Origin: Anolis carolinensis
Taxonomy: Eukaryota
Direction: 5' to 3'
Length of the DNA stretch: 64,000 nt
NCBI RefSeq assembly: GCF_035594765.1
Contig: NC_085843.1
Location: forward strand, 41,555,955-41,619,954
Numbering within the stretch: the first letter of the stretch is position 1; every line of letters starts with the position of its first letter. The notes beneath the pieces are model-generated. The model had not been told where the DNA came from. It ran no database searches and was given only the letters and a program-made list of their open reading frames with translations. The translations under genes were made by a program, and so were the position numbers. This document shows positions 1,301 through 49,556 of the stretch, piece by piece.

Positions 1301-1848
1301 TCTCTTCCAACTCTATGATTCTATGTGGTTATCTGGCATAGGAAATGCATGCAGGTAGACTGTATTCATTGACTTATGGGGCCTCTGGAAGCAGCAGGTG
1401 ATTAAATCACTTATTTAGGTATCGTATAGCAAAAAAGGGCACCAGCAAGTGTCACTTTAAAAAAAAAGCTGCACTTCCAGTGTTTAGTACTTTTGTGTAT
1501 ATTTGGTGGTAACAACCACAAATAAATCCATTCCAATTCTATGAAGCAAGTTGCCATTTGATGTGAAGCTGTGTTATTTATTCACAAATGTGGATAAACA
1601 AGTCTTTCAGGGAGGAACTGAGCAAAACTAAAGATTACTAATTAAGCAAATACTTTCCTAAATACAACAAAGGGGATAATGATGCTAATAGCAAAGGCCA
1701 GAAATATTCCACCAGTGTAAATTGGAAAGTCTTTTCAGCAGAGGATCTTCTCTGGCATTCTTTTTCTCAAAAGCACAGAATTCCTACCATTCCATTTTGA
1801 GGGAAAGATTAGGAGAGGGAGCAAAAAATATTAATGGTAGGTGCTTAC

Positions 1849-4800
1849 CTTGTTGAATCCCAGTGTTCTACTGCATATAATAGCTGTGCAGTTTTCTGGT
1901 CTTTCTGGACCAGATATTCTTTCTTGGTAAGTCGTATGACCTCAAAGAAGTTAAGTGGAAGGCGTATACAGTGCCTTACAGGCATAGATATCTAGACAGG
2001 AATATTGTGACAGATATTTAGAAAACATTTAAAACTAGGAGAGGATAACGTATGGCCAGATGTTATTGGACTGTCATTGGATTGTAGCCAATAATCAGGA
2101 ATTATGGGAATTAGAGTCCAACTTCATGGTGAAGAGCGTACTGGCTTCCCAGCCCAACAGACAAAAACATTGAATTTACGTAGTGTTTTATAGCAGAAAG
2201 AGATTTCTATCACCATTGCCTTAAACCAGTGTTTGGCAAATTGTACTCCTCCAGGTGTTTTGGACTTCAGCTCCCAGAAATCCCAGCCAGCTTACTAGTG
2301 GTTAGGAATTGTGGGAGTTGAAATTCAAAACACCTGGAGGAGCACAATTTGAGAAACTCTGCCCTAAACTAAGATATAGACTATTGCTGAAGTTTTATGT
2401 ATTTCTTTTAAAAAGTAAATATAGGAGCCTGAACAAAGTTAAAAAAGGAACAAGTATTGTTAAGCCAAAAAAGAAAACACAAATAGGTTAGAAAAATGAG
2501 AAACAAATTGTTTAAAGAACAAATTGTTAAAGGATTAAAGCCTTCACAATATAAATAAAAATTAAAATATCAATCAATAGAGTACAGATTTCATACATGT
2601 GTTTTCAAAACGGCAAAACACTCTCTTAACAAGTTTATCAAAATCTTCCGAAAACTATTCATGGGATAGTACAACATATCATGGCGTGAGTAAATAAACT
2701 GTAAAACATATAAGAATTATTTGAAGAGCACTTACTTTGATGCAGCAATCCTGACAGATCACACTAAAGTAAAACAAAAAATCCATGCTTTAGATGCAAG
2801 GATGGTGGAAAAGCAAACCTCAGCAAAAGTAAGGTACTTTCATGGGATTTGAGATACAGTGTATATAAGTCTGTCGCACATGTACTGACCAATTTTGAGC
2901 TGGAATACTGAGTACACTTCCAGGGTCAGAAAAACCTGACAACACCACCTGGAATATGCCTAAAATGCCAGAAAAGACTGGCATCCATCAACCATATAAT
3001 GAAGTGCCTTTGTAGAATCAATTTTCAGCATATCCATCATGCACACAGAAAAGGGAAACTAGCATGCCTGCTACTCTTCTATGCACTTAAATCCACCAGC
3101 TTTTAGCAGCTTTGGTAAGAGGTTGCAGGGATAATGAGAAGTCTATGCTGCCAGTTGTCATTGTTCTATTGAGAGCCTTGAACATATTGTATGCAAATCT
3201 ACCTTCGGTGTAAGTTTTGGTTGTTGTTTTTTTAACATCTTTTGTACTTCTTGTACAACTTACCTGCTGCAGAGATGGCACATATAAGGCCATATGAAGT
3301 ACTGGTTACGGCAAACGGGGCAAACCTATAGAGGAGAATACACGATTTGTAAACAATAGTAACTACAGTAGATTTTCAGTTAACTGACACCCATGGAGAT
3401 TGGTAAATATCAGATAAATGTTGTCTCTGGTTGCTTCAGAGTTACAGTAGAGTCTCACTTATCCAACATTCGCTTATCCAACGTTCTGGATTATCCAACA
3501 CATTTTTGTAGTCGATGTTTTCAATATATCATGATATTTTGGTGCGAAATTCGTAAATACAGTAATTACTATGTAGCATTTCTGCATATTGAACTACTTT
3601 TTCTGCCAAATTTGTTGTATAACATGATGTTTTGGTGTTTAATTTGTAAAATCATAACCTAATTTGATGTTTAATAGGCTTCTCCTTAATCTCTCCTTAT
3701 TATCCAACATATTCGCTTATCCAACGTTCTGCCGGCCCATTTATGTTAGATAAGTGAGACTCTACTGTACTATTAAAGTAGGCCTAACTAATACTATACT
3801 TGGCCTATACTACACCATAGTATATATTGACTTCATATGGATAATGATGGATAACACTGGCCAACACACATTTTGGTGCCTCAAATGTTAGCCCTGTTTC
3901 TGTTGGAGATAGCAACCCTCTCAAGCCTCCTCTATTTAATGTTTTGTCTGTATTATAATGTATGGGCTTATTTCCTGAAGAGTATGTCTTCTTTGGATTG
4001 CAGTTTTCTTAGCTCTATGTACTTGAAGCAGAGGGTGGGGCTGCAGACTATGTGACTGGTTCAGTGACTGTTTAGAATGCAGTTTTAAAAGGAAGACAGT
4101 TGAGGCTTGAGTCTGAGTGCAGGAGCCAGTGTTAGGAGCTAGAAGGCTTGAGTCCCTTGGAAGTAGACTGTTATAAAAGAGAGCTATACAGAGTTTTAAA
4201 GAGACTGTTAAAGACTATAAGTTAAAGACACAAAATGAAATGTTTTAAAGTTTAACCTGACAAGAAATGTACCTGTATATTTAAATATATAAATATGTTA
4301 TTTTAAAGAAGTCTACTTGAATCTTTGTCTGCTGAGAGCATCGAATAGAAACAAGATGTTTAACTGCCCAGTGATCTTCCATTACCCAATAAACTAAAAG
4401 AACACTCATGAAACTCTGCTACCCAATACGTTATGATCCTAATAGGTCATAATCCCCAATAGGTTATGATCCTAACAGGTCATAATCCAATAGTCCAAAA
4501 GTTTCTGGGTATATTTGATCTACTGATTCCAAAAATGGAATTAATTATATATATGTTTTTAAGGTTTTTATAATGTGTTTTAACAATGTTATTAATGGAT
4601 CTGTATGTATTGTTTTGTTTTTATGATTGCATTTTGGGCATTAAATTTTGCCAATTTTTGTAAGCCACCCTGAGTCCCCTCGGGTGAGAAGGGCGGGGTA
4701 TAAATGTTGTAAAAAAATAAAAAAAATAAAAAATGGCACCAGTTTCCCCCTACCAGTGCTAGTTTTTGAGATACAGAACATACCATATTCCATCGCATAA

Positions 4801-7800
4801 TAGCCACCATCACATAATAGTCATACACCCTGTTTTGGGTACCCAAATTAGTATTTTAGGATTTTTCGCATTAATAGTTGCATCCTTGATTTAGACAGCC
4901 TCTCTGCTGTAAAGATCTAACAGTCCCTTCCATGTGTCTTGCTGCCCTGTCCTAAACAGCTTTGTCTGCCCCCCCCCCCCCACCTTTCAGCAAGGGTGCT
5001 TAACTCGCTTGCCCATCCATCCATCCGCCTGCTCATCTGCCCACCAAATGGCGCTTCATACCTGAGCCCTTGAAGAGATACACAGATCTGTCTGGATGGA
5101 ATTTTTCATTTCTGAATATCTTGTTCCCATCAAATCTGCAATGGTTGGTAATGATACTGCTGTATATGTTTTCTGATTGTAGATAGGAAGTGACTGGGAA
5201 TCGAAAACATTAAAAATATTCACTGGGACTTTCATTAATTGAACAGGACTAAAACATATTCAATATAGTCAGACCCTAGGCCCTCTTCTGGGCTCTAGCC
5301 CCCTTTTGGACCAAGTGTCCTTAACAATGTTTACCAATTCTCCTCTGTAAGTGTCCTGAATATACTTTGGGGAGGGGAGAAAATGGGCAAAACACTTTTA
5401 GGTTGCCTAAGTATTGCATGTTTTAAATGAGAATTCAGGAATACTTGGAAATATAAAAGAAATATGTTGAGTCACTTAGATTCCTTTACAGTCTGCATGC
5501 CTTCCTCCTGCTAAAAGGGATTACCAGTAAGACTGATTCATTCTTTCAATTGATTCTATATTTGCCTTATTTGGTTGTAAAATACATGATTGTTTATTTA
5601 AGTGCTGTCTAAACAAAATCTACAAAATTAGTTTTAAAAAGAAAGAAGAGGTACCTTAGATTCTGGGCCTGAAGTGGTACAATCCAGCCGAAGCTTTTTA
5701 GCATTTGAAATGTGTAATGTACTGCTCTTCTGCTCAGAGAAGATGCTGGCACTTGGAGAATTCAAGACAAACTTCTGACAGTTTTCTGAAGAGAAAAACA
5801 CATAAATGCAAAAACACAATATAAGGGGAAAGTGTGATCTGATGATGAAACATACAGAGCTGTTACAAGTTCCACTTCTATTGGAACTTAGCAAAAGTAT
5901 TGCTAAGCATGTAAAGATTTGGATCCCAGGCACAGAAGCTATACATCAGCAAAAATATGTATGTACTAATGAATATTTATCTACAATATCACTTACTCAA
6001 CAGGTTAGGAACCAGAGCATTGTCAAAAAAAAGAGAAATTTCAAAATATGAAACACAGTATTTTAAAAGCTTTTTTATAAGTATGAATTGAGAGGAAATA
6101 TTATTTATTATTTCATTTACGATATACCACTTTTCTCACCCACGGGGGACTCAAAGTGATAAACAACATAGTAAAGGGCAAAGATTCAATGCCTCACATC
6201 CATATTTTAAAAAACAACAACATTGCAAGTCTAAAAGCAGTCACATATAACCATAAATTAACATTAAAACTATATAAATAATCAAACATACCATAAAACA
6301 TTAAACATTAAGGCATTTAAACATTGCATCGATCCCGTGGTTTCCTATAACTGGATGCGTATTGTTATCATTCATCGAATGCCTGCTTGCACAGACAAGT
6401 TTTAAGCTATTTCCTGAATGCCAAGAGGGAGGGAGCCATCTAATCTCACTGGGGAGGGAGTTCCACAGCCGAGGGACCATCACTGAGAAGGCCCCATCTC
6501 TCGTCCCCACCAATCACACCTGTGAAGGCAGTAGGACCAAGAGAAGGACATCTCCAGGTGATCTTAACACTCTAACTGGTTCATAAAATCAGTGTGTAGT
6601 CTTAGATATGCATGTCAGGCCATGGAAGCATAATGACACATGATAAAAGAGTAGACTGTGGATTCTGACTATATTAAAAGGGGTTGAAAGAGGATCAAAA
6701 AGCAGACCCCTGAAAAGCAGTGGATGGGCATATAGGAATAGATTTGACCAAATTAAATACATTTAGGGTAGTGGTTCTCAACCTGTGGGTCCCCAGGTGT
6801 TTTGGCCTACAACTCTCAGAAATCCCAGCCAGTTTACCAGCTGTTAGGATTTCTGGAAAGCAAAAGCATCTGGGGACCCACAGGTTGAGAACCACTGGTT
6901 TAGGGAAAGGGGCCTGTTAGCAAAAAGCATGAAAGTGAGTGTTTTGAATTTTATGGAAAGCATGGAAATGGATGCAGAAGAGGAAAAGAAGAGCAGATAG
7001 TGGAGAAGAATAAGACAACGGGGACAAAAACTGACATCCATGACAAGTCCCTGCTTTGGGCCTACCATTGGTAGTGACTTGAGTTTGGTTTCAGGACCTC
7101 ATGGATACCAATATTCATACCCAAGCCCCAACATATACAAATGACATTTTCTTATAGAAAATGGCAAAATCAAGCTTTGCTTTTTGCAATTTTAAAAAAC
7201 AAACATTTTCAATCTGTGGATGCAGAATCTATGGATATGGAAAGCCAACTGTATTTGCTTTTGGTTTTGGCCTTAATCACCAACAGCAGTATACAGCCTT
7301 TGACCACCTCCATATAGAGGTATGCAGCTCACTTCCAGTTTTTAAAATAAGCAGATGCAGTGTCAAAATAGTTCCCAAACCCACTATTTCAGGTATACCT
7401 TTGCGATAACTATGACTTCTTTCTGTAAGGGTTGGGCGAAGCATTGGTGGATTTTTCACTTCCATCATGAGTTGATCATGAAGGCTGAGCTTTTGATAAG
7501 GTCTCTCTTTTCGTTTGCGCACCGATGCCTACCAAATAAAAAGATACAAATCTAGTTCTTCATTTAATTTTTAGCACGTATCAGATGGAAATGCAAGTCC
7601 TTCCCACGATTCAAGTGGACTCTCTGGTCATAAAAGAAATAAATTGTATCTTTTCTCCACTATATGAAGCCAATGTGGAGAAAGGTTGGCCGTTCAAATA
7701 TTATTGGGCTGTACTCTCAGCATTTCTCACCACTAAGTCATGGGAGCTGTAGTCCAACAAGACACGGAGAATCAACATCTAGCCAATATCTGATATAAAG

Positions 7801-10800
7801 GATGAGATATTAGTCTAGTCCTTTCAGAGATCTAAAAAATAAGCATTGGGCATGTAAGGTACTACTGCAGGAAGAGAGCCGATATGGTAAAACAATAGGA
7901 AGTCTACAAAAAAGCATGCCAGTAATTAGAGAATATAGGTATGGAAAGGCTGGTAGCTCTATCAAATGTTATTTTTGCATGCTTTTATACATTGTTCATA
8001 AGATCACCCATTTATCAGAAATTACTCTTTCATATCCTTACAGTTTTCCAACCTATTTTTATCCTGTTACTTTGACCTATGAACTGAAAACTGCTATCTA
8101 GAGTTGTTTGCTGGACAAATAGGCAAGAAGGAGAAAACAAACAGAAGATATCTAGAAAAAAGTTTCTGGTCAGGCCTCTTCAACCTGTGGCTCTCCAGGT
8201 GTTTTGGACTTCAGCTCCCAGAATTCCTGACCATTGAACAAACTTGCTATGGATTCTGGGAGTTGGAGGCACAAACACCTGGAGGGCCGCAGATTGAAGA
8301 GGCTTGAATCTGGAGGATACAAGGAATAAGCAAAGTGTCCTATCTCAGCTCAATAACTGAGGTTGAAGTAGACTGAAGAGTCATGTTAAGAAATGGCTAA
8401 ATGTCTATGCTTGTTTAGAAATCAGCTTTACAATATAGCATTGGGTATTTCGGACCTTGATGCAGACAAGAAATACTAATACAAAAATAGATGGGAATAT
8501 AGTAGGAATCCATTGAGGGTTGTCAGTCATGGCCAAGGCAATTTGTTTGGAAAACTAGTTTAAGAGTAGAGACTATTTTCTCAAGTAGTTGTTGCATAGA
8601 TACTAAAGGCTAGAGATGTAGAGCTTGATCACTTACTTTGTGGAGGACATAGCGCTTATTTTTTATATCATCCAACACTGCGCTATATGATAATTGTAAA
8701 CCCTCGTTGGGAAGGGGCTTATGTGGAAGTTGCTTCCTGGCCGTTTGCAACTTCACCCCCTTCTGCACATCACCAAGTACACCCTGCCACAAGTCAACCT
8801 GAAAAGGGGAATGACAAACTAAATGTGACTCTCTAGAATCTAGATCAGTGGTTCTCAACCTTTTATTTGACCAGGGACCACCTGATTGGGAACCACTTTG
8901 ACCAGGGACTACTCTCCAACATTAGTACCAAAAGGGTTACAAATCAGTTTTTGGTCAACTTTAGATTTGCTTTGGTTATTCTTAGTGCTGATTCAGAAAA
9001 CTGCATTGGATGGACCATATCAGCTCTATGTTCTGATACAGAACATATGCCATCCAGTAGTCACCATCTGCTTGCCCACAGAAAACAATATTTAATAACC
9101 TAGAGCTGATGTGGTCTATCTGGTGCAATTTTCTAAATCAGCACCCCAAATAACCCCAGGAACAGGCCTAATAACAAAGACACCAAGACATCCCTGCTTC
9201 CAGGTGCCACATGGAACAGCTCCGTGCAAGAGGAGGAGGAGGAGGAGGAGAAACAGCAGTCAGGAGGCTTGTTACACCTTTTGTGGATAGTTAGCCTCTC
9301 CCCACCTGACATCCCCGTTGCCTTGGCACTATAAGTGAGTTTCGCAAAACTAATAATTCTTGCTGCAATTATGTAGTAATGGTTAAGCCGCAGATCATAT
9401 TTTAGTTCTTGGGGACCACTGGTGGTGCACAGACCATAGGCTGGGAACCACTGGTGTAGATGAACCTGTGTTGCTAAGGTAGCAAAGTAATTTTTTGGAT
9501 TTCCTTCAGCACAGAAGCTTGCAAACTTTAGATATCCAACAATATGTCACTTTTTTCTTCATGGAAAAAGTGAAGTCTGAAAGCTGAAAGATAGTAATTT
9601 ATACCCAGTTTTTCACCTTTTGCGGTTCAGTGTGGTCTTCCATATCCATTTCTCTCAAAACCTGAAATAAATGAAAGACATGTTTTTGTTTCTTGTTTGC
9701 TTTTTGTAAAGCTGATAATGTATCTGCTTTCCAGCTTCCAGTTATGTTTCTTAACAAGGGGGGGGGGGGGAGAGTTTAAGACGGATTGAAGATTGCTTCC
9801 CTTCCCATTCTGAATACCTCTTTGCAGCTTTGAATGGTGAACATGAGTTTCTGACATTCGCTGTACTCTGCAAACAGCAATTTGCAGATCCCTGTGTAAT
9901 GGCTGGCAGCTTTTGAAGGTTCGAGAAAATGATCTTCACAGATCTGAAATGAAAAATAGCCATCAGCTCTGGATTCATATTAAAAAGATTTATACTGGAC
10001 TACAAGATGGCTTTTATGTTTATCTAAATCCTAAAGAAGACAGAGGCCCATTGTACATTAATACAGTTGTAGCAATATGATTCTACTTTAAGTACCACTA
10101 TGGACTCCTGATATGCAGTGTTCAGGAAGGGGCATTTAAAATGCTCTGCCAGAGAACTAAATGCCTCACCAGGATATGAACCCAGTTTTTCATAAGATGA
10201 AGTCATGACAGTTAAAATGAAATCATACTGCTATGATAGTGTAGTGAAGTGGGTTTCAACCTTCCTTATGCTGCAACCCCTTAATACAGTTCCTCATGTT
10301 GTGGTGACCCCCAACCATAAAATTATTTTCGTTGTGACTTCATAACTGTAGTTTTGCTACTGTTATGAATTCTGGTGGGGTTGGGGGTGGTTAAATTTGT
10401 CATTTGAGAGTTGTAGCTGTTGGGATTTATAGTTAACCTACAATCAAAGAGCATTCTGAACTCCACCAATGATGGAATTGAACCAAACTTGGCACACAGA
10501 AGTCCCATGACCAACAGAAAAGACTGGGTTTGTTGGGCACTAATCTTGGTTTTTGGAGTTGTAGTTCACCTACATCCAGAGAGCACTGTGGACGCCACAC
10601 AATGATGGATCTGGACCAAACTTGGCACGAATACTCAATATGCCCAAATTTGAACACTGGTGGAGTTTTGGGAAAGAAGGCCTTGACATTTGGGAGTTGT
10701 AATTGCTGGGATTTATATTTCACCTTCAATCAAAGACCCCCTTGAACCCCACCAATGGTAGAATTGGGCCAATCTTCCCATTCAAAACCCCCATGACCAA

Positions 10801-13800
10801 CAGAAAATACTGGCGGGATTTGGGTTTCTAAGACCATGTGTTTTCTGATGGTCTTTACCAACCCCTCTGAAACCCCCAGGGGCAGTTCAACCATTAGGCG
10901 AACTAGGCGATTACCTAAGGTGTCATGAGTCGGAAGGGCGCAGCCTGCCTCCCTATGCCTCCCTGGCTCCCCTGCCCTCTTTGCACCCTCCGACCTCCTC
11001 CCTCCTGGAATCGCTGAAGGTGGCGGGGACAAAGCAGCGGAAGGAGAGGAAGGCTGTGCCTGGGCCTCCTTCTTGGTACTCAGTCCACAGCACCCTCTGC
11101 GGCCTGGCTTGCCTCCATGGCCTGGGCCTGGCTCTGCGGCCTGGCCTGGGCCCACCTCTCAGCAGCAGGTAGGCGAAGGAGGGTCAGAGGAGGAGGAAGG
11201 AGGAGGGTCTGGCAGTGCCTCGCGCTGCCCAGGGAGCCCCTTGCTCCCTCCCACTCCCTCCCTTCACACCCTCCCCTTCCCCCTCAGCCCACCCAGGCGC
11301 CGCCGAGCTTCCCAGGGCCAGCCCAAAGCCGCCACCGCCTATCAAGGCCAGGGACTGAGGGGAGTGGGAGGGAGTGGGAGGGGGCAGGGGCTTCCTGGGT
11401 GGCGCGAGGCACTGCTAGCCCCGCCTCCTCCTCTGACCCTCCTTCGCCTCCCTGCTGCCAGCACCCCCCCCTTCTCGGAAGCGCCCGGGCCGGTGGGCTG
11501 TTGGGAAAGCACCATGGCTGAGGTGGCGAGGCTGGGGCTGCTCGTTGGGGCGCTGCTCCACTCCTGTGCAGCCTGCCGGCACCTGGGGGGAGCCATCCAG
11601 TGCCGGACCCAGGTGAGCCCTCTCCTGCTGCTGCACACCAAGCCGCTGCTGGTGTCCAACCGAGGCATGTGGGTGCCCTTCGGAAAGGGGGTTGCTCTTG
11701 CCCTCTAGCTCCTCCCCTTCCTCCTCCTGCTCCTGCCCACCGGAGGAACATGGTTTTTTTCCTTTATTGCAGTGGCTGGCTCTTTCCCTTTCTTTGCTCC
11801 AGGACAAGCCATTAACTTTTTGAAGTCACCCCACCGCTCTTGTCTTGGTTGGTCCCGTAGGTAAGAAAGCAGCAACGATCTGGGGCCCCTTCCACACAGC
11901 TGGATAAAAATTCCACATTTTCTGCTTTGAACTCTAATATGTGGCAGTGTGAACTCAGATACCCCACTTCAAAGCAGTTATAACTGACAATATCGGCCTT
12001 GATCTGGGTTATCTGAGTCCACACTGCCATATAATCCAGTTCAAAGCAGCTATTGTGGGTTATCTGCCTTGATATTCTGGGTTATATGGCTGTGTGGAAG
12101 GACCCTCAGGGCTCTTCCACACAGCCATATAACCCAGAATATCAAGGCAGAATAACCCACAATAGCTGCTTTGAACTGGGTTACCTAAGTCCACATTGCC
12201 CTATATCCCAGTTCACTGTTTGGTACTAAATTGCAAATATAGTAATTCCTACATAACACTACCATGTATTGAACTGCTTTTTCTGTTGATTTGTTGTAAA
12301 ACATGATGTTTTGGTGCTTAATTTGTAAAATAATAATGTAATTTGATGTTTAATAGGCTTTTCCTTAATCCCTCCTTATTATCCAACATTTTCACTTATC
12401 CAACGCTTTTATTTTTCAGTGATTGGTTTGGGGGGCGCCAAAATTCTGTTCGCCTACACTTGAAAATTACCCAGGGCCAGCCCTGGAAACCCCCTCGCAA
12501 CCCCCCAGGGGTCTCCATCCCCAGGATGAGAAACGCTGGTGTAGTATGAAAGTAAAGAAATGACGTGGAAAACAATAGACTCAGTGCATATTGGAAAGGT
12601 GACAACAGGTGAACAGAGACATAACTTTGTTCCATCTTTTTTTCTTCTATCAGAATTAGCACGGAAGCAACAAGTGAAGAACATCTCCTTGTCAAGTAAT
12701 CACCTTTCTGACATAGAAGAAACAATGATGAATAATATACTAGAGGTCCAGCTATGAAAGAAAAGCAGTAAATCTATCTGGAAAATACAATACTCAGGGA
12801 TAAAGTGTGCTTCTAAAAGAAGGATTGCTAGTTTTATCAGCTAAAAGACTTTACAACTACTCCATCATTTCCTACATGGATTTTCTCTTGAAAGAAAAAT
12901 CAATATAAGTAATAATGGGAAATGGCAGGATAGCTGCAAATGATAACAATATAAGTCTCATAACTGAGCAGGAAGTGCAGAATGATTTCAGATTATCAGG
13001 AAATATATTTGGAATTAAATACAAGGGCTATAGATATGATTTTGGAAAATCATAATTATATAGCACAACTTCATCCATGATTCTTCCAGCCCATGTAGAC
13101 CTTGATCTTCACCTTCTCAGCTCTCTAATTGTGTCAGAAACATCAATGTCCTTCATTCAAAAGTTCCCTACCAAATACTAAGAGTGTGACAGAAGTAGGT
13201 CTCACCTAAACTGCCATATAATGAAGTTTCAAACTGCATTATAAGGCAGTGTAGATGGAGTTGTAGATGGGAAACATTGATGTAATGTAGTAGACTGGTC
13301 TCTGGGTTTTTTTTTTGACTAATTTTATTTCCTAACCTTTTAGCCTTTTATGAGCTTTGATTGTTTTGTGCTGCTTCTGCTTGTATGCTAATTATTTTAT
13401 AAATATTTTAATTCAACTTTTTTTTTAAAAATGCACTGTACTGCTAATGACTCTAGGAATTTTAATCAGATACAAGGTATAAATGCCTTTAAGTGAGTTA
13501 CTTAATGGAGTTGTAGAACTAGAAAAAGAGTAAAAGAAAATAATCACCTTGATTACATCCTGGAAAGCAATGGTGGCTTTTGTAGTCCCTGTGTTCAATT
13601 TCACCATAAAACGGATTAGCTTCTCCAAGTCCTCACTAAGCTCTCTCTCCATATTACTTTCAATCCCCCAATCCAAAGCTTTGTAGATGAGCATTCCCAA
13701 TAGTTCGGTCATCTGCAAAGGAGGCAACTTTAAGTCTTGGTACTAGGGTAAGGTTACTCAAAAGCAATATATATATATTGCTTTGACATATGACATATTT

Positions 13801-16265
13801 TATGCAGTATTCCTCTGTTTTATTTCAAATGTTTTGTCCCACAATTAAGCCGGAACAGTGATAGGAAGACAATTTGAAATGTGGTGCTGGGGAAAGAGTC
13901 CTGTGGATATCGTGGAATGCCAAAAAGACAAATAAATGGGTTCTACAACAATCATGCCTGACCTCTCCCTAAAAGCCAAGATGAACTTTCCCTAGAAACC
14001 ATATTATGAGAAGACATGTCTTGGTAAAAAAGACAATGCTTGCTAAGGTGGAAGGCAGTAGGAAAAGAGGAAGACTGTATTCCAGATTCATAGACTCAAT
14101 CGAAGAAGCCATGGAGCTATGGCACTGAGTCTGCAAGGCACAGTTGGGTTGTTGATGCTAGAGTGACTTGGAGGTCTCTTATTCAAAGTTGACCTGACTG
14201 CAATAAAATCATTTCCTCCAGGGTCGGTATAAAGAAGACAAAGGTTTATTCATTGATAACGAACCTGAATAAAGTAATTATGTAGAATAATTTCACTTTG
14301 CTAAACCCTATGCTGAAAGCCATGTTAAATGGAAGAGCTTTACCTTGTCTTCTAAGGCATCATTGGGTTCTAGACTGATGTGATTCTCTGAAACAAAAAA
14401 TAAGTAAAATAAATGGTAAGTTCCTTCAGTCTTATTAACTCTCTGTGAAATGTGCCCATTAATAATATTTCTGTTCTTTTCATCCAGTAGCCAAGAGTTT
14501 TCACCATAGCCACAGAAAACAAAGACACTATTTCATTGAATCTTGTGCTGGAAGAGCAGCAAGATATAAACCGGTCATATTTGCACAAGATAATTGTTGA
14601 GTCCCCCCAGGTGAGAAGGGTGGGGTATAAATGCTGGAAATAAATAGAAATAAATACATTTTGGAAAGTTAATTTTAAGACTGTAATTCCCATAAATCTA
14701 GGACCTGTAATCCAAACAACAACATTTATAAACTCTAGTTTGCAAAATAACCATGTTCTACCAATCCTAGAGGAATTACTTAGATGCAAGCAAAAGCTAT
14801 TGGACATAACCTATTGGAAATAACTGCACTCAGTCTCTGGGCAGATATCCCTTTGGAAATAAATGGCAATCATAACCTTACTGAAAAAGAAAAATGATGT
14901 CATATCCGTTTGGCAAATGTGAATCTCCATAAACATATGGAGACCACCTTTTGAAAAACACTAGTCAAAAAAGACATGACCTTATTAGAAGTCAACCCTT
15001 TCGACAAGTAATATTCATAAGCATTCATGTAATAGCACAAAGATAGCTTAGCTGTTAAACTGAAGAACCATGTAACCATGCCAAGGACAAAGACATGCCA
15101 CTACAAAAATATATTTGGTTAGCAGAGGATGGTTGTTTTGGTTGTTGTGAGATTTTCATGCTGTATGGCCATGTTCCAGAAGCATTCTCTCCTGATGTTT
15201 CACCCATATCTATAGCAGGCATCCTCAGAGGTTGTGAGGTACAGAATGTTGGAAACCAAGCAAAGGAGGTTTATATATCTGTGGAAAATCCAGGGTGGGG
15301 AAAGTAACTCTTGTCTATTGGAGGCTAGTTTGAATGTTGTAATTAATCACCTTGATTAGCATTAATGGCCTTGTTTTTTCTGCCTGGGGGAATCCTTTGT
15401 TCGGAGGTGTTAGCTGGCCCTGATTGATTCATGTCTGGAATTTCTGGATGGTGGTTTTTTTGAAGTTGAAATTGCAGTTTGCACAAAAGATATACACTCT
15501 ATTGAAATCTCTTAGTTTAAAATATGCACTCAGAGATAATAAAAAAAAACAAAGTCTTCTTTGAAAAATAACGTATCTTGTTTACTCACTCTTTTTATTC
15601 AATTGTTAAATTAGCTTTGTTTAAACATCTTTTTTACTACTGATTCAAATCTAATGTTTCTAGAAGCTTTCCTTACACTCCTTAGTGTTGCAAAGGACTA
15701 GGATAAAACAAATTAGGCCATACTATATTATCACAGTGATTATATTTTATAATGATAGGAATCAAAATTAGTCATAAAATCAAAGATGTTTATAGTGCTG
15801 TGTAGTACTAGATTTTATTTCCTCAATTTTTAACCAGACTAAGATCATTTGACTCCAGTACAGAAATTTACTCAAAACTGAGGTCAAAAGTAGTAAACTC
15901 CTTAAGAAATACTATGCAAAAAACTACAGCAATAAGGAAAGAGGTAGAATATGAAAGCAAATGTAGAATTAAGAGAAACATGAACACACCTATTGGAAAC
16001 TTCCTGATTTTTCCTTACCAATGTCATGCTGTAGATTGAAGGACACGCTACCATCAGAATGGATGTAAAGGTTGTCAATATCTAAAATTGTCATATGCGA
16101 TACAGAATCCAGTCCTTGACCTAAAATCTGTTTCATTTTATAACAAGACTGGAAACAAATAGCCCACGCCTGTTCCTCGTTTATGGGCTGCTCATAATAG
16201 CTCAGAAATTCAGCCAGAGAGATCTTTGTGAGATCTCCATTACTAGAATTCTTCCCCCCTACCAT
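1849..16265 (-). CDS. Divergent Spire-family actin nucleation factor (protein spire homolog 1-like), 3'-partial
   Basis: Exons (5'->3', all AG/GT, phases continuous): 16265-16019, 14387-14344, 13712-13548, 9943-9818, 9661-9605, 8798-8637, 8110-8042, 7528-7399, 5785-5655, 5193-5062, 3325-3264, 2763-2736, 1991-1849; 1496 nt without a stop. KIND motifs ISLAEFLSYYEQPINEEQAWAICFQ, LIYKALDWGIESNMERELSEDLEKLI, HYTGICKLLFAE. WH2-like VDLWQGVLGDVQKGVKL, SAVLDDIKNKRYVLHK, SLHDQLMMEVKNPPMLRP. Spir-box-like LPTIADLMGTR. FYVE-type CPVC..CHLC..VICQDCC. Last exon(s) lie left of the window. Exons 8110-8042 and 5785-5655 rest on splice signals and frame rather than homology. Confidence 0.88.
2226..2365. mobile_element. 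Short palindromic hAT-type MITE
   Basis: CTCCAGGTGTTTTG ... CAAAACACCTGGAG inverted arms. The same family recurs at 6769-6897, 8170-8306, 21547-21706, 23131-23236, 35918-36052, 36496-36600, 51105-51222 and 59722-59842. Confidence 0.65.
3445..3767. mobile_element. Tc1/mariner-pogo-type MITE
   Basis: TIR CAGTAGAGTCTCACTTATC ... GATAAGTGAGACTCTACTG with TA TSD; nested in an older related MITE. Confidence 0.85.
4570..4731 (+). mobile_element. L2-type LINE/SINE 3' tail
   Basis: GTAAGCCACCCTGAGTCCCCTCGGGTGAGAAGGGCGGGGTATAAAT followed by an A-rich tail. Confidence 0.6.
6100..6590 (-). mobile_element. L2 LINE 3' fragment
   Basis: ORF remnant RDGAFSVMVPRLWNSLPSEIR and L2-type tail. Confidence 0.75.
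6769..6897. mobile_element. Palindromic hAT MITE
   Basis: AGTGGTTCTCAACCTGTGGGTCCCCAG ... CTGGGGACCCACAGGTTGAGAACCACT. Confidence 0.8.
8846..9453. mobile_element. Non-autonomous hAT (Charlie-type) element
   Basis: TIRs CAGTGGTTCTCAACC / GGCTGGGAACCACTG; imperfect 8-bp TSD ATCTAGAT/GTGTAGAT. Confidence 0.75.
10247..12538. mobile_element. SPIN/URR1-like non-autonomous hAT composite
   Basis: Left end matches recalled URR1/SPIN_NA sequence (TTAATACAGTTCCTCATGTTGTGGTGACCCCCAACCATAAAATTATTTTCGTTG); right end GAGAAACGCTG; TSD GTGTAGTG/GTGTAGTA. Confidence 0.75.
10877..12485. mobile_element. Nested GC-rich hAT (Tip100-like) element
   Basis: CAGGGGC...GCCAGCCCTG ends with a perfect 8-bp TSD GAAACCCC (10869-10876, 12486-12493). 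Confidence 0.75.
13840..14195 (+). mobile_element. Old RTE-clade LINE 3' fragment
   Basis: Degenerate FEMWCW...HIMRR...GKVEGSRKRGR-like coding remnants. Confidence 0.65.
15139..15450 (-). mobile_element. Penelope-like fragment
   Basis: Same repeat as 44089-44856; hammerhead variant GAAACATC. Confidence 0.75.
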
Positions 16266-16370: not shown

Positions 16371-16444
16371 CTGTTTTTGAAAAAAAAAATGGAACAGGCT
16401 TTATTAAAGGGCAACTAACTACCTCCGCGGTCTCATCAAAGTAT

Positions 16445-21869: not shown

Positions 21870-22200
21870 GAAAGCAGGCCTTGACGCCCCCTTACGGCGG
21901 CTGAGAGCAAAGGCAGGGGAAAGGAGCCTTGAACTACGGCTCCCCCTGCGGGACAGAAAACTTGGTTGAGTCCTACGAAGACCTTCCTCCCCCTGAGTGG
22001 AATGTGGTTTCATCCAGGAAAGATGGCGGCGCCCATACGAGAGGAAGCGGTGTGGAACCGGCTACGAGTGCCATGGCCGGGCTGCAGCGCCGGCATCGTT
22101 GTACCGGATCACCATGCTTCGGGTAAAGAAAAGGAGGCGAAGGAGGGCCAGCCGTCCTTTTAACAGCCCCTCACTCCCTTGTCCATGACTGTCTGCCAGG
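21870..22200. promoter_or_regulatory. NEPRO CpG-rich promoter/first exon, possibly bidirectional
   Basis: Local CpG enrichment; YY1-type AAGATGGCGGC overlapping the ATG (22020-22030); ACTACGGCTCCC SBS-like motif near 21933. Confidence 0.6.
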
Positions 22201-25200
22201 CCATGTGGATTCGAGGTGTATCTGCACTGTGGCGTTAATTAGTGCCATAGAATGCTGGGTTGCTGTGAGTTTTCCAAGCTGTATGGCCATATTCCAGAAG
22301 CATTCTCCCCTGACGTTTCGCCCACATCTATGGCAGACATCCTCAGAAGTCGCCCTCATCTATGGCAGACATCCTCAGAAGTTTATATATACAGTAGAGT
22401 CTCACTTATCCAAGACTCACTTATCCAAGGTTCTGGATTATCCAAAGCATTTTTGTAGTCAATGTTTTCAATACATCGTGATATTTTGGTGCTAAATTCG
22501 TAAATACAGTAATTACAACATACCGTTACTACGTATTGAACTACTTTTTCTGTCAAATTTGTTGTATAACATGATGTTTTGGTGCTTAATTTGTAAAATC
22601 ATAACCCAATTTCATGTTTAATAGGCTTTTCCTTAATCCCTCCTTATTATCCAAGATTATCCACTTATCCAAGGTTCTGCTGGCCCGTTTAGCTTGGAAA
22701 AGTGAGACTTTACTGTATCTGCAAAGGCAGGAAGCAGCCAGGCTTTGAAGCTGCAAGGCTAATAGTGCTAATCAAGCTGTCCATTTGCAACATTCACACT
22801 GGTCTCAAGCAGACAAGAGTTCTTTCTCTCACCCTGAATATTCCACAGATAAATAAACCTCCCTTGTCGGGTCTTCGGCTTAGAAATGGAGATGAGCACC
22901 ACACCCCAGAGTCAGATATGACTGGACTTAACGTCAGGGGAAAACCTTTACCTTTACTTTTTTGCCTAGTCTCCAACATACCTCACAACCCCTGAGGATG
23001 CTTGCCATAGATATGGGTGAAACGTCAGGAGAGAATGCTTCTGGAACATGGCCATACAGTCTGAAAAACTCACAGCAAACCAGTGATTCCGGCCATGAAA
23101 GCCTTCAACAACACAATCCTATGATGTAGAACAGGCATGGGCCAATTTGGGCCCTCCAGGTGTTTTGGACTTCAACTCTCACAATTCCTGGAATTGAAGT
23201 CCAAAATACCTGAAGGGCCCAAGTTGGCCCATGACTGCTGTAGATGCACCTTGGCAGAAACTGGGCGATTCAAGATTTTCATTGGCTATCATGAACAGTG
23301 GGAGCCCCTGGTGGTGCAGCAGATTAAACCGCTCAGCTTCTGAACTTGCTGGTCGAAAGGTCGGTGGTTCAAATCCAGGGAGCAGGGTGAGCTCCTGCTG
23401 TTAGCCCCAGCATCTCGCAACCTGGCAGTTTGAAATCATGCAAATGTGAATAGATCAATAGGTAGCGCTCCGGCATGAAGGTAACAGCGCTTCATGCATC
23501 ATGCAGGCCACAGGACCTTGGAGCTGTCAATACCGGCTCTTCAGCTTAGAAATGGAAGTGAGCATCAAAACTCAGAGTTGGACATGACTAGACTTAATGT
23601 CAGGGGGAAACCTTTACTTTACCTTAATATCATGAACAATAATAGGGAATTAGGGCAGAGTTTTTCCAATATTACCTAAGTAATCCAGAAATAAATAGTC
23701 CCTCAAAAATAATGTCTAACTAATCTTGTCTTCCTCTGTAATGCAGCTTGTTTATCCCTTATAATAATAATAATAATAATAGCAGCAATAATAAAAAATT
23801 TATTTCTAACTCACTCTCTCGTCCCAAAGGGACTCAGAGCAACTTCCAAAAGTAAAATGGTAAACATTCAATGCCATGTGCAGTATCAAAATAAACAAAT
23901 TAAGCAAAATAGGCAAGCAAAACAGACAATTAACATTAACAGTTAAAATAAATAGATTCAAATAAATAAAACAACCTTAACCAGAGAATGTTATCAGTCA
24001 GGTCTCAAAAGTAACACATTAAGCAGTTAAAATCTATATAAAATCTGAGAATATAAAGTTTGGCTATTCCAATAAGTTAATGTGATCATTGTCAGCATAG
24101 TAAATCGGGTTAGAGTTGGTGTTAAATAAATCCTCTTTCTTTACAAAAGCTAAAGTACAAAGAAAGATTTTTAGTTATTTTTTGAAGGAGATGAGTGAGG
24201 AGGCTGTTCTGATTTAGGTATTAGGAAACATTGTTAAAGTAGAGTTAAGGGCCAGTATTGAGTATGATAGATAAAACATTTATGTACTTAAATGGCAAAG
24301 GTAAAAACCAAAATAAGTATCAAAACCTTCTATGTCTGTAACATCATCTTTTGCTGATAAGCTATTGCTGCTGCACAAAAGCTAGCGACTTTGGTAGTAA
24401 TTTTGGGGTGCTGGTCAGCCAGGAGGTAATCAACATAAAACCATACAGATCTCCCTGGGAAACTTTCTAAAATTGGATTTATAAAATGTTTTCAAAGGTC
24501 TCAGTAAAAAGAACAGTACAGTAAAATGTGCCCCACAGTTTCCACTTCCTCAGCCTCACAAGAATATAGGCTTTCATCTTATGGTACTTTGTTATATCTT
24601 CCCTCCAGTAAAACAGAAGGGTGTACATTGAATTTAGCCAAAGAGAATGCTTTCCTATGTTTTAGGATAATTAGATTGCCTAAGTACTCTACAGGAAGAA
24701 GTGCCGCAGAGTACTTAGGCAATAGACTCTCAGGCTTCATCTGCACTGCTATATAATACAGATGTATCTGTTTTGTATTGGATTATATGAGTCTACATTG
24801 CCATATAATCTAGTTCAAAGAAGGTAATCTTTATTCAGAAACTGGATTATATGGCAGTGTAGATCCAGTCTCCATTAAACAAGTCTCCTGGTAGATGCTG
24901 GATAAATGTAGTTTCTGGTTGTATGAGAGTTTCTATGAAAAATAGACCTTACTAATATTGCAACCCATACTATACCATAAACTATATTTATTTAGACATC
25001 AGATAAAATGTACAAATAGGTTGTTGTTGATATGTTGAACAGATTCTTGCAAATTCAGGCAACTGTCTCTTTTCCAGTGGGATGCTTTGCTGTTGTTAAG
25101 AAAGAGGGCCGTGCTCTTGACAACATACTAACAGATAAAGCCATGGTTGCAGAACAGTGCCTCCTTCGTGCCATCATCTACCGTTTCCGCCACCAGATGA

Positions 25201-28200
25201 GTCATCATAAGCCATATCAGTCTCTCAAACAGGTCAGAATAAGAGAATTGCCTGGAAACACATTTGGACATTGTCTTATCTATTTCCTGGACATTAGGAA
25301 GAACATCTGCCTAGGAGTCTGGTGGAAGCTCCTTCGTTAGAGGCTTTTAAATAGAGGCTGGATGGCCATCTGTTGGGGGTGCTTTGATTGTGCTTGTCCT
25401 TCATGTCAGGCAGTTGGACTAGATGGCCCATGTCATCTTTCCAACTCTGATTCTTTTTGAAACTTTTATCTTGAGAAAGAATATCAGTTTATAGGTATTC
25501 ATCATTGGATAGAAACTATTTTTATGCTCCTATATTTAAGAACTTGAGCTTGCTTTCATTTAATGGAGAAATTATATTTTTCATTGTCTCACTGGAAAAA
25601 TAGTGTGAATCTAATAGAGTAATGTCTATGTTTTTTACAAAGAGAGCCTCAGTCTGATACTTTCCTTAGTCAGTTTCTGAAAATTTTCATTAACATAATG
25701 CTGTGGTTCGTTCTATCTATCAGTGTGTATCAGTGTGTATCAAGCCCCCGGTGGCGTAGTGGGTTAAAGCCTTGTGACTTGAAGGTTGGGTTGCTGACCT
25801 GAAGGCTGCCAGGTTCAAATCCAACCCGGGGAGAGCGCAGATGAGCTCCCTTTATCAGCTCCAGCTCCATGCGGGGACATGAGAGAAGCCTCCCACAAGG
25901 ATGGTAAAACATCAAAACATCCGGGCATCCCCTGGGCAATGTCCTTGCAGTCAGCCAATTCTCTCACACCAGAAGCGACTTGCAGTTTCTCAAGTCACTC
26001 CTGACACGAAAAAAGTTTGTATTATGCAAACTTCATTTTAGTATGCGTGAATTCACTTACTTTCATGATGCTATAGAAATGAATGTACAAATAGCTTTGA
26101 ACAGGAAGTTTTTTTAAAGAGAGTGTAGTCTACCAATACATAATCACTGCTTGTTAGGCTCTGATTTTCACAGTGATGGGCGTTTAACTGACTGATTGTT
26201 CATTTGACTTACGGTTATTGACTTGGCGTAGAATAAAAAGATGCCTGCTGCTGCTCAGCCGTTTAGTCGTCTCCGACTCTTCGTGACCTCATGGGCCAGT
26301 CCACGTCAGAGCTCCCTGTCGGCCGTCACCGCCACCCATTCCTTCAAGGTCAACCCAGTCACTTCAAGGATACCGTCCACCCATCTTGCCCTTGGTCGGC
26401 CTCTCTTCCTTTTTCCTTCCATTTCCCCCAGCATCGTGATCTTTTCCAAGCTTTCCTGTCTCCTCATGATGTGGCCAAAATACTTCAGCTTTGCCTCTAA
26501 TATCCTTCCCTCCAGTGAGCAGCCGGGCATTATTTTCTGGAGGATGGACTGGTTGGATCTTCTTGCGGTCCAAGTCACTCTCAGGATTTTCCTCCAGCAC
26601 CAGAGTTCAAAAGCATCTGTCTTCCTTCGCTCAGCCTTCCCTATGGTCCAGCTCTCGCATCCATAGGTTACTATGGGGAATACCATAGATGCCACTCTCA
26701 TATTATTTCATACATACCAATTATGAATTTAGAAATTTAGTGAACTGAAATGTGTCTAGATGAAAAGTTTCATTTCTCAGCTAATCTCTTAATGTGCTCC
26801 CACTCTCTTCCAGGTAGAACAATGCTTGAAGCGTTTAAATCTAATGAATCTGGGAAAGGCCATTCAAATTCTTACACAACTGGGCCCCATGTAAGTGACA
26901 TAAACTAGATGATATTTATGGAAGTATAAGTCTTACAGGATTTATTTTCCTATATTTGCTAGGTTAAGCACTTTAGCTAAATTTATATTGGCTGAAATCT
27001 ATAGAATTTAAAGTAACTAAATTCTTTTCTTTTCTTGCCAAAGCTGCTAGATTGTTGTGTGGTGGAATCGCCTTCATAAAAGCTTTTAAACAGAGGCTGA
27101 ATGACTGTATTTTGGGTATGCTTTGATTGTGCTTTTCCTGCATGGCAGGGTGTTGGACTAGATGGCCCAAGTGGTCTCTTCTAACTCTGTTGTTCTATAA
27201 TTCTAGGACTTCCCATTTTTAGGTGACTTTTTCCAGATCACTACCCCAAACCACTAGAAAACACTGCGGTTTCCTTGCCTTACCCTCCCACAATACTTGC
27301 CTCTCTCCAAAAAAGGTTGATTTCCTGAAAAGAAACTAGAAGTGTCACAACATCACTTTTAGTTTTTTAGTGATGCACAAGGGTTGCCCTTTGGAGGTAC
27401 ACAGAGTCAAAAAATGTCTTCTGCATGTCTCTCTCTTGGTGTAAGAAAGAGAATGTTTTCAAACTATGCTGAACACTTCAGTAGATAACAGAGTGTCATT
27501 TGAAATCTTACACAAATGGCAGTCAGTCCAAGCAAAGGTGCCCTCCCCCCCGGCTTGTTTTTGTTTCTTCTTTTGTGTAACAAACATAATAAATCAGCAA
27601 TACTTTGTACCCAGCTGGATAGTTTAAGCATTTTTGAAGAAAAGTTTCAAAAAACAAATAAAACCTAAAAGCAAAAACATGGGGCAAAGTTAAGTTAATG
27701 GGAATAGAATATTTTTTTTAAAAAAATTACAGGAGCAAGCCATTCCAAATGATCGGGTGCTTGTCAGAGTTAAGTGCTGGAAGATGCCAACACAGATCCA
27801 CATGATCTATTTCTTATATTTTTCATCATTTTAAACAGGTATCAGAAATCTGAAAATGCTGCAGAATGTTTGGTTCCCAGCCAACCTGTGATAGAAGTTG
27901 TGATGGTGAAGATACTGGGTGGTTGCAAGCTTGTGCTGCGTTTACTTGAATGCTGTTGTGCCGCATTTCTGTATCCTTGTAAGACAAGCACATGGAACTG
28001 ATTTGGAAACTGATGCAATTCTCATTTGTTGCTGTGTTCTTCAAAGTCATTTCTGACTTATGGTGACTCTAATCTATCACTGGGTTTTCTTGGCATGATT
28101 TATTCAGAGATTTGTCTTTGCCTTCTGAAGAGTGTGACTTACCCAATGTCACCCAGTGGGCTTCCATGGATTGAGCAGAGATTTGAACCTTGGCCTCCAG

Positions 28201-31200
28201 TTCTAACCCAAAGCATCACACTGTCTCAGTTCTCATTTAGAAATGCAAAATGGCATGGGAAGTCCATTATTAGAAAAGATATAAAATAAAACAAACAGAC
28301 TTTAATCATATATTAATTGTGTTTACGTCTTCCAGTGAACTCAAGCTTGTATACATGGCTTTCTTATGTGATCTTATGGACTTTTCAAGAGAAACTATGT
28401 GTATTTATGTGTATTATGTGTATATCTGCCATAAGAGACATTGTAGAGTTAATACAGTTTGATACTTCAATTGCCATGACTCAATGTTATGGAATCAAGG
28501 GGATTGTAGTTTTACAAGGTCTTTTGCCTTCTATGCCAATCAGTAATGGTGCTTCACCAAACACCCAGGTTCTATAGCATTGAGCCATGGCAATTAAAGT
28601 GGCATCAAACTGCATTATTTTTACTGTATTAATGCAGTATAATAAAAGAGAATGACAGATGTCAGTTTTACGTAGTGTTAATCAAGATTTAGATATTTTA
28701 TATCATGTTTATGTTTCAAGTTCTGTTGAATAATTTGTTTTATTCACTTGAGTTCTGAGAATGTTACACAAAGCATTCTAGTAGTAAAGGGATTAAGGGG
28801 AACACCTTACAACTTCATCTTCCTCACATAAAGTATCCCTATGGATAATAGGTCTGATAAGGTTTCATAGCATAATGGAGACAAGAACCTGCATCACCTA
28901 AGTCATAGTCCAACAATAACCAATACAGTGTTAACAAATTAATCCTTTTTTCTGTTATTTGTCTGGTGTCAAACTTTGCATTCCTCCATGGCTTCACAAA
29001 TTAGCCTAAATATTATTTAAAGATTTAATAGCATACAGCTCTTGAGTCTTACCCTCAGGTTTGATTGAATGTTTTCTGCTCTCTGAGTTTCACGCAGTGA
29101 AACACAGTTGGTCTTTAATTTTTGTCCCTTCTCCCTTTGATCCATTATTATCCAACCTTAATTTAGTTCTTTAGCTTGTCTGTTAAGCATCTTTGTTTAC
29201 AAGAGCATATACTTCTGAATACTCTGGTTTCAGGATTGCTGAGCCGACTATGGTATGTAACAGTTTAAACACCTTGATTATCTTATTTCTATCTGTACAC
29301 TTGCATTTCTTGAGTAGAGAGCTTGCTTAATATGTTATCTGAAAATAGCAGGTAGTAGCCAATAAACCCTTCCCACTGACATAATGATTTCCATGAATGC
29401 AATTGTAGTGGGTGCCATAACATGTTCCTAGGGTTTTTTTTAGTAACTGATCTAACCCTTTTATTCCACACAGCCAAAACTGCCAGGAAGAATCCCAAGC
29501 ACTGATAAAGAAGTGCAGTTAGCTGCTATAACATTCTTCCACTTAAACATCCCTTTGCTCTTTTTCTTGTTTGCCTATCTTCAAGCAATTACGAATTGTG
29601 GCATGCTATTAAATTGTATTTTAATTAAGCCCAATATCCAGTGCTTGTGACAGTGTTGAAAAGAGGGTAACCCCGATTTGTATTTAAAATAAAGAAAAAT
29701 AGAGAGGACGCAGAGTGGAAGAAAAGTAAAAGTTAGAGGAGTAAAATAGTTCGATATTGGGAGAGGGGTGTTGAGTAAGGTGTGTTACATCCAATTGTAT
29801 CCATGATGTCTCTTATGTATGGAGATAGACAAGTTGCCCAATGCTTTGATTAGCGGCAGGGGCCAAGGTGCCCATTTCTTTGAAGGGAATGTGTAGAAGA
29901 GAGACTGGCAGAAGAAATGAGTGTGCAGAGGCCTTGATGTTTGATGCTGTTTCAAAAACATGGAAACGTTTCATTGCTGTTCTATCAACCAGCAACCCTA
30001 ACAAAATCCCATTGTTTTCAGTAAATTTACTTGTACCCACGTTTCAAGCAGTAAGAGATATGTGTGTTTGTATGGCAGTTTAAAACACAATAAATTATAA
30101 TACTTTTTTACAATGTCAGATAAGCTCCATGATAAAGGATAGCACATTGCCTGTACATAAAGGGATTTCTGGTTCTTCTACCTGGGTGAATATAATTGCT
30201 GAGATTTGCAGGCTTTGAAATATTCTTGTGTTTATGACATTAACAAGGAATTGAGTGTTTGAGTACTCTTCTTAGCCTTTTCTTCTGGATACCTGATACC
30301 AGAGTTTTCTGTATCTGATACCAGAGATTGTTATAGTAGAAGGACTGGTAAAGTCATATTGTTGAGATCAAACTAGGAGTAGCAAAAAAAGAAATAAAAC
30401 ATTGGAAAATTTTAGTGGAAGAGTCAACCCAATTTAAGAAATGTACCAGTTACACAAGTGTTTCATTTCTTCCCTCTTTGTCTTAGGCTTCTTTCTAGAG
30501 GTGTATTAAAAAGCCTCAGTTCTTTGTATAACATCCTGTTTGAATTACATCGAGAAGTTTCGGAAATACAACCAAGTCCTTATATAAAAGGATTTGCTTT
30601 TCCTCCTGAAATAAATGAATTTGTGGGAACCTCTTATTCAGAGATTAAGAAGAAAATGCCTAGAGCATTTGTGATGAAAAAGGCCAGAAGTGGATGGATG
30701 AATAAACTATTTGCTGCAAGCAAGGCCACATCTCAGTCTCAGCTTGAGACAGCAGCCGGTCCTACAGCAGTCGGAGGGAAGATGAGGAATTCGCAAAATG
30801 CTGTTGATATCGGGAAACCAGTTCTGGTCAATAGAACTAACCGAGGTAACAGACTGGCCTTTTCATTTGGGTGAGGGAATGGAAAGAAAACTAAGACTCA
30901 GGTGCAGGTTTTAAAAATTATTAGGATCCTGAGCCTGAGGAATAGCTTTTAAACAGAGTGATAGACACTACTGGAATTAGCTTCTAGGACAGCTGGTGAT
31001 AGCACTCTTTTCTTTCTCATTCAGGATGAATGATTTCTGACCATTTGATATGCGTGTAAACTTCTGCTTCTCCTTAACAGTGTGTTTAGTTGCTACTCTA
31101 AAAAGTCTGAGGAATGGCGACATGGTTCTTACCATGCCATATGTTTCTTTTCAAGAGTGTTGTTGCATGTGCTTTAAAAATAGCCGCTAGCCATATTTTG

Positions 31201-40041: not shown

Positions 40042-40220
40042 GATTCCTGGAAGCGACGGAAATGCCCCTTTGTCTTGGCCAACCAGGCAGCACTTCCGCC
40101 TGCGCTGCGATTGGTCCTTTCGCAAAACATTCCTGCGCATGCGCCGTGCGAGGAAAGTAAGCCACTGCAGGCCCTCGCTTTGCCCTTATGCAGAGATGTC
40201 GGGGCCTCTCTCCAGCCTTT
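40042..40220 (-). promoter_or_regulatory. TAF13 promoter/5' UTR
   Basis: CpG-rich; ETS site CACTTCCG at 40091, CCAAT box (GATTGG at 40109), NRF1 site TGCGCATGCGC at 40134-40144. Confidence 0.65.

Positions 40221-43308: not shown

Positions 43309-49556
<6,248 letters not shown>

Follow-up and report, generated by a model that had tools for sequence, protein, structure and literature searches.

Does the multi-exon gene next to NEPRO in the lizard Anolis carolinensis encode a third Spire protein, and what could such a protein do? SPIRE1 and SPIRE2 nucleate actin, and their partners are FMN formins, RAB GTPases and myosin V. From the letters of a 64,000-nucleotide stretch of contig NC_085843.1 (hereafter the window), it had been predicted that 13 spliceable exons with an open frame encode an ancient, intron-containing and fast-evolving Spire duplicate, retained in sauropsids and lost in mammals.

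We found a minus-strand multi-exon Spire gene running from position 16265 to 1849, where the original prediction had placed it (table 1). A splice-site scan mapped 12 coding exons with canonical AG/GT ends, which splice into 1427 nt, i.e. 475 codons, with zero stops (using the exon 9 acceptor at 5193). The window sequence contains no N. The predicted frame and splice ends were recovered, but the predicted count was one too many, because exon 13 (58 codons and then a stop, with the fourth CxxC pair) lies approximately 90 bp beyond the first base of the window in the public Anolis genomic record, which is 100% identical to window positions 1-19265. The splice-site scan and a tblastn search with eight orthologs found no 13th exon inside the window. 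Hence, all but one of the 13 coding exons lie within the window, and the 3' exon outside it is intact. Two donors separated by 12 nt are available to exon 5 (9605-9617); the public models use the earlier one, and homology to the conserved Trp preceding WH2-A favours the later one. A candidate exon 9 acceptor at 5172 was replaced by 5193 on the evidence of a contig joint. Among public isoforms, P0185 omits exon 3, and P0178 and the python P0002 omit exon 6, which carries both WH2-A and WH2-B.

Table 1. Coding exons of SPIRE3 and neighbouring genes, in window positions.
Feature	Positions	Strand	Evidence
SPIRE3 coding exon 1 (ATG at 16265; KIND start)	16019..16265	-	Pfam KIND E 9.4e-15
Exon 2 (44 nt, KIND loop)	14344..14387	-	splice-site model, public models
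Exon 3 (KIND core; Y-x-A-L-D-W-G and E-R-E-L-S stretch)	13548..13712	-	Pfam KIND E 8.8e-13, alignment
Exon 4 (KIND end)	9818..9943	-	Pfam KIND E 8e-4
Exon 5 (KIND-WH2 linker)	9605..9661	-	splice-site model; public models place the donor 12 nt earlier, at 9617
Exon 6 (divergent WH2-A and WH2-B)	8637..8798	-	alignment; alone no Pfam match
Intron 6 (site of the WH2-C exon in frogs, crocodile, starling)	7529..8636	-	no recognisable relic
Exon 7 (WH2-D)	7399..7528	-	splice-site model, RNA-like contig, alignment
Exon 8 (linker; site of the SPIRE1/2 myosin-V motif, motif absent)	5655..5785	-	contig, alignment
Exon 9 (divergent Spir-box)	5062..5193	-	acceptor 5193 backed by contig joint
Exon 10 (CxxC pairs 1-2 of FYVE-type finger)	3264..3325	-	contig, alignment
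Exon 11 (28 nt, CxxC pair 3)	2736..2763	-	splice-site model, contig
Exon 12 (FYVE insert)	1849..1991	-	splice-site model, contig, public models
NEPRO (head to head; 5.8 kb between its ATG and that of SPIRE3)	22023..35108 (end approximate)	+	homology
TAF13, 4 coding exons	35461..40042	-	homology
GTPase exons taken as GTPBP8 (part of gene)	43473..47823	-	MMR_HSR1 E 4.1e-6

Splicing is shown for exons 7-12. Run X11, whose library and tissue are unrecorded, has an RNA-like contig of 1299 nt (depth 60.5) that joins these exons exactly at the predicted boundaries (7399/5785, 5655/5193, 5062/3325, 3264/2763 and 2736/1991). On the + strand, every joint has CT..AC ends, and the listed pieces are free of mismatches. 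The contig continues for 129 nt beyond 1849 and, at its other end, for 544 nt upstream of exon 7. The joints of exons 1-6 fall outside the contig stretch compared and are based on the sequence and the public models. Three other runs (X13, X8 and X7) gave repeats and intron pieces with zero splice joints; they may be DNA or come from non-expressing tissue.

The protein belongs to a clade of its own. Our model is identical to the public Anolis carolinensis protein G1KYN0/XP_008106071 at 470 of 475 positions, the differences being one substitution and the exon 5 donor 12 nt earlier. RefSeq isoforms of this gene carry both names, spire homolog 1 and spire homolog 2. We inferred a tree of 62 proteins and then a careful tree of 23 proteins rooted with lamprey; groups were named beforehand by annotation and search rank, and most search matches were omitted, keeping the trees small. 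The larger tree gave three clean clades, SPIRE1, SPIRE2 and SPIRE3, and the smaller one supported them at 98/95, 100/100 and 100/100, respectively. The Anolis protein groups with other squamates, then with turtle, crocodile and birds, and then with frogs, a caecilian and the coelacanth. Its crocodile, turtle, bird, frog and coelacanth relatives in this clade carry 'spire 1-like' names. When the Anolis protein is constrained to group with lizard SPIRE1, the log-likelihood falls by 360 units (AU test, p=1.8e-9); the AU test covered this grouping only, SPIRE2 being a separate 100/100 clade. Separate SPIRE1 and SPIRE2 proteins also occur within the same lizard species, e.g. Hemicordylus. Hence, the protein does not nest inside SPIRE1 or SPIRE2, and the predicted ancient third paralog stands. 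The order of the clades is another matter: SPIRE1 and SPIRE3 are joined at only 94/94 in the 23-protein tree, and the 62-protein tree flagged long branches meeting. Exon boundaries match those of frog, crocodile and starling SPIRE3 at shared exons, and exons 3 and 4 are separate in Anolis, unlike the fused exon 3/4 of SPIRE2. Separate exons 3 and 4 and shared intron positions have been described for SPIRE1 and SPIRE3 (bioRxiv 10.1101/591974). No SPIRE3-clade protein among the best 120 matches of our protein search was labelled as mammal or euteleost.

This clade has already been described. The division of gnathostome Spire proteins into three groups, named SPIRE1-3, is that of Kollmar et al. 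(bioRxiv 10.1101/591974, 2019; Commun Biol 2024, PMC11231147), who reported SPIRE3 in birds, reptiles and ghost shark (bioRxiv 10.1101/591974), its loss in mammals and euteleosts (PMC11231147), a shared exon structure, and the absence of the third WH2 (WH2-C) in sauropsids (both papers). At the level of identity, we found no differences between the Anolis gene and this third gnathostome clade, in which sauropsids miss WH2-C. Given the 470/475 identity, the 100/100 clade, the AU test and the match to the published range and missing WH2-C, the gene is almost certainly Anolis SPIRE3, the third jawed-vertebrate Spire paralog. The central idea of the original prediction was therefore right, with mammalian loss as reported in the literature, but it is not a discovery, because SPIRE3 was already catalogued and named. 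Retention in sauropsids also holds, but restriction to them does not, as frogs, a caecilian, the coelacanth and reportedly ghost shark have the gene. A text search of the PMC11231147 supplements gave no mention of SPIRE3 or Anolis. What goes beyond the Kollmar main texts is the membership of Xenopus Eg6, the frog gene order, the missing WH2-C exon in 16/16 squamates and the missing myosin-V motif in 126 proteins, all detailed below.

The domain order is that of SPIRE1 and SPIRE2: KIND, WH2 array, Spir-box and FYVE-type finger. Pfam, searched one exon at a time, matched KIND (PF16474) in exons 1, 3 and 4, with the profile positions in correct order, and gave no significant family match, WH2 included, in the remaining exons. 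In alignments, WH2-A, WH2-B and WH2-D match the SPIRE1/2 WH2 motifs; we call them divergent because of the missing exon-wise Pfam match. These three WH2-like motifs fall within the two to four tandem WH2 domains characteristic of the SPIRE family. The Spir-box is divergent, and the zinc finger, of FYVE type, has its four CxxC pairs in the public Anolis protein. Alignment and an intron search showed that Anolis has neither the WH2-C exon nor the canonical motif for myosin-V binding (GTBM), so that the 'full' domain order predicted earlier holds except for these two elements. Relative to SPIRE1/SPIRE2, with which it shares 32-35% identity, Anolis SPIRE3 lacks one of the four WH2 motifs, the GTBM and the acidic DEGY loop of the KIND. 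The last two absences are general in the clade. With isoforms counted, the canonical myosin-V motif occurs in 102/116 SPIRE1 and 125/129 SPIRE2 proteins but in 0/126 SPIRE3 proteins, and the DEGY loop in 116/116, 126/129 and 0/126, respectively. Both leucines of the motif are required for binding (PMC5021521); a cryptic myosin-V motif may nevertheless exist in SPIRE3.

Most of the putative formin contacts of the KIND are kept. The domain resembles the solved SPIRE1 KIND structures 3R7G/2YLE (E ~1e-24; PDB search with residues 1-200 of the public Anolis protein), and the KIND call is independent of this match because the exon-wise Pfam search also gives it. We take the formin-tail contacts of the SPIRE1 KIND to be Y134, D138 and E146, and also E143. 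The first three align with Anolis Y107 and D111 (of the Y-x-A-L-D motif) and E119 (before R-E-L-S), and the E143 position is Ser in Anolis. The Y..D motif is retained in 117/126 SPIRE3 proteins (isoforms counted).

The WH2 array differs among vertebrates. SPIRE3 has 16 coding exons in frogs, crocodile and starling, and 13 in Anolis and Sceloporus, which have physically lost two exons of the linker and the one encoding WH2-C. Searches for relics of these three exons in introns 6-8 gave only chance-level matches (best protein E 0.065, best DNA E 0.05). Birds (the chicken SPIRE1L group) are less reduced than squamates: their WH2-C exon is degenerate but still there, and their linker is longer than in Anolis. 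All 16 squamate SPIRE3 proteins lack the WH2-C exon, and all 16 retain the WH2-B and WH2-D cores at a spacing of 27 residues; turtles and birds space them by 50-52 residues, frogs by 55. The spacing is also short in the coelacanth models, which may reflect an annotation gap. The helix of WH2-A is absent from all five snake SPIRE3 proteins (P0152, P0166, P0167, P0168 and P0184), which, as read from the sequences, is a reduction going further than in lizards. The family thus offers a natural deletion series (four WH2 in frogs, a degenerate WH2-C in birds and turtles, no WH2-C exon in lizards, no WH2-A helix either in snakes, and the myosin-V motif in none) that could help to sort out which Spire elements are important in oocytes.

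SPIRE3 evolves fast, as had been predicted: lizard and turtle are 57% identical in this protein, but 89% in SPIRE1 and 78% in SPIRE2. Yet, dN/dS (Nei-Gojobori; dS is saturated in the deeper pairs) is well under 1 in six pairs; among them, Anolis-Sceloporus gives 0.34 (0.24-0.48), crocodile-starling 0.38 and the pair of Xenopus species 0.16. With these values, the intact exon 13 and the splice joints of exons 7-12, neither neutral decay with disabled 3' exons nor lack of splicing describes the locus: the gene is real, spliced and constrained. By region, Anolis-Sceloporus dN/dS, computed on 55-143 codons each, is 0.14 in the KIND, 0.70 in the WH2 region (90 codons), 0.98 in the linker and 0.28 in the Spir-box/FYVE part. 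The KIND is the most constrained part.

SPIRE3 had been thought functionally unstudied. This is not wholly so, because Xenopus laevis Eg6 (pEg6; NP_001086543, Q6DFF8), annotated spire1.S, falls inside the SPIRE3 clade in both trees. Its exon boundaries match those of Anolis SPIRE3 at all shared exons and it has no canonical myosin-V motif either; it differs in its 37% identity, a recognisable WH2-C, 16 exons, and PEPCK/Z-alpha neighbours instead of NEPRO. Eg6 thus appears, by sequence, to be the same gene as SPIRE3. We take the J prefix of the Xenopus tropicalis 'spire1' identifier Xetro.J00911 to denote chromosome 10, and the record CM004452 to be that chromosome; by name and chromosome, we infer that this gene is SPIRE3 too. 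PMC2064741 calls Eg6 Spir-2 and cites Le Goff 2006 for its mRNA being maternal and vegetally localised. In embryos of eight cells, Xetro.J00911 shows a 7.7-fold vegetal enrichment (PMC4684228). Frog papers on vegetal maternal 'spire1' or 'Spir-2' mRNA probably describe SPIRE3. The main texts of Kollmar et al. (bioRxiv 10.1101/591974, PMC11231147) mention neither Xenopus nor Eg6, which the CyMoBase data may classify. Chicken SPIRE1L (GeneID 418362), presumably the bird SPIRE3 ortholog by name, chromosome and bird synteny, is the top down-regulated gene in F6 versus small yellow follicles (log2 -7.15), and SOX3, MLPH and EIF4E1B fall together with it (PMC7367319). This fall would reflect dilution of oocyte RNA. 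Together, these ortholog data suggest that SPIRE3 expression is biased to oocytes.

What SPIRE3 does can be reasoned from its parts. We lean, with limited confidence, towards an egg-biased, formin-binding and membrane-held actin regulator without a direct myosin-V link. By analogy with the family, the KIND would bind a formin of the FMN family by its tail, the protein would be held on vesicle or cortical membranes by its Spir-box and FYVE-type finger, and WH2-A, WH2-B and WH2-D would bind actin, helping the formin to build or anchor an actin mesh while the oocyte grows. SPIRE3 probably lacks the direct link to myosin V that SPIRE1/2 have. Its own nucleation is probably weaker because WH2-C is gone. 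Two WH2 domains are enough for nucleation (PMC11231147). In fly, the N-terminal half of Spire is enough for the oocyte mesh, and Spire-formin synergy requires the KIND-formin contact (PMC7183766). The egg-formin role draws on the low dN/dS of the KIND, the retained Y..D motif and the egg data on Eg6, Xetro.J00911 and SPIRE1L; the WH2 dN/dS of 0.70 in iguanians, the loss of the WH2-A helix in snakes, the Ser at the E143 position and the unrecorded tissue of X11 count against it. The weak constraint on the WH2 region makes its main rival a squamate SPIRE3 that no longer nucleates and acts as a membrane-bound modulator or brake, whose KIND inhibits or positions the formin and whose eroded WH2 motifs add little. 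The gradient from the KIND (0.14) to the WH2 region (0.70) and linker (0.98), the losses of the WH2-C exon in 16/16 squamates and of the WH2-A helix in five snakes, and the inhibition of formin nucleation by isolated KIND (PMC7183766) are what one would expect of such a brake. We nevertheless consider it unlikely: the regional ratios come from 55-143 codons only, all 16 squamates keep the WH2-B and WH2-D cores at a constant distance, and two such domains can nucleate.

Even less probable is that SPIRE3 serves RAB/myosin-V vesicle transport broadly, in several tissues and in large part redundantly with other Spire proteins, through a myosin motif too divergent to be recognised. Choanoflagellate SPIRE does bind myosin-5 through a motif of very low sequence similarity (bioRxiv 10.1101/591974), and the losses in mammals and euteleosts suggest redundancy. 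Yet, the canonical motif is missing from all 126 SPIRE3 proteins compared and present in most SPIRE1 and SPIRE2 proteins, squamates have lost two linker exons and evolve the rest of the linker near-neutrally, and the ortholog data point to eggs. Finally, exon losses, long branches and the two RefSeq names might evoke a decaying duplicate, or a mis-called SPIRE1 or SPIRE2. We give this almost no credence: it is refuted by a frame open across 13 exons including the last, exact splice joints, dN/dS well under 1 in six pairs and the AU test, and Hemicordylus has distinct SPIRE1 and SPIRE2 proteins.

The position of the gene bears on its origin. It had been placed next to NEPRO and GTPBP8. NEPRO is indeed its head-to-head neighbour (from 22023), but TAF13 sits between NEPRO and the GTPase gene at 43473..47823, which we take to be GTPBP8. 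The head-to-head arrangement of SPIRE3 and NEPRO occurs in Anolis, Sceloporus, turtle, crocodile and starling, the starling order being TAF13-NEPRO-SPIRE3. The last TAF13 exon matches the starling gene beside NEPRO at 100% identity across 56 residues; therefore, the NEPRO-TAF13 order is common with birds. In mammals, TAF13 presumably lies elsewhere (human 1p13). Frog SPIRE3 is away from NEPRO, a position that is sauropsid-only among the species compared. A PEPCK gene of 622 residues precedes it in three frogs, and in two of them a Z-alpha gene comes next. On the human map, PCK1 and ZBP1 are neighbours at 20q13, SPIRE1 lies at 18p11 and SPIRE2 at 16q24, and the three regions have in common the paralog families TUBB, melanocortin receptors, PTPN1/2, PMEPA1/LDLRAD4 and VAPA/B. 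This sharing suggests that SPIRE3 may originally have lain where frogs have it and that its place beside NEPRO would be secondary.

Through synteny, the frog gene order offers a way to approach how the three Spire genes of vertebrates arose. Tentatively, and with more doubt than for the egg-formin role, SPIRE3 could be a whole-genome-duplication ohnolog from an ancestral PCK1-ZBP1 interval that moved beside NEPRO in the sauropsid ancestor. It would be Eg6, the myosin-V-independent maternal Spire of large yolky eggs, lost in mammals and with its nucleating core being stripped in squamates. Kollmar et al. could not relate the Spire duplications to whole-genome duplications (bioRxiv 10.1101/591974; PMC11231147), and the ohnolog reading, if true, addresses this question, which they left unanswered. 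It would also correct the spire1/Spir-2 label of Eg6 and give SPIRE3 its first functional data.

Some observations arose along the way. Just downstream of SPIRE3 in the frog Spea bombifrons (L004:20060-21840), there are two tandem Z-alpha-like exons of a ZBP1-like gene, and such a gene is also downstream of SPIRE3 in X. tropicalis (L005). The SPIRE3 protein of the turtle Platysternon (P0187) is misnamed 'chitotriosidase-1'. In Lampetra planeri, model P0295 fuses a KIND to five cadherin repeats and is probably a merger of Spire with an adjoining cadherin gene. Intron 3 of the Anolis gene contains a GC-rich block (10870-11760) with nested inverted arms (11162-11262 versus 11366-11458, 86-97% complementary) and other repeats on its flanks; it could fold into a single long hairpin and is probably a transposon-derived insert.
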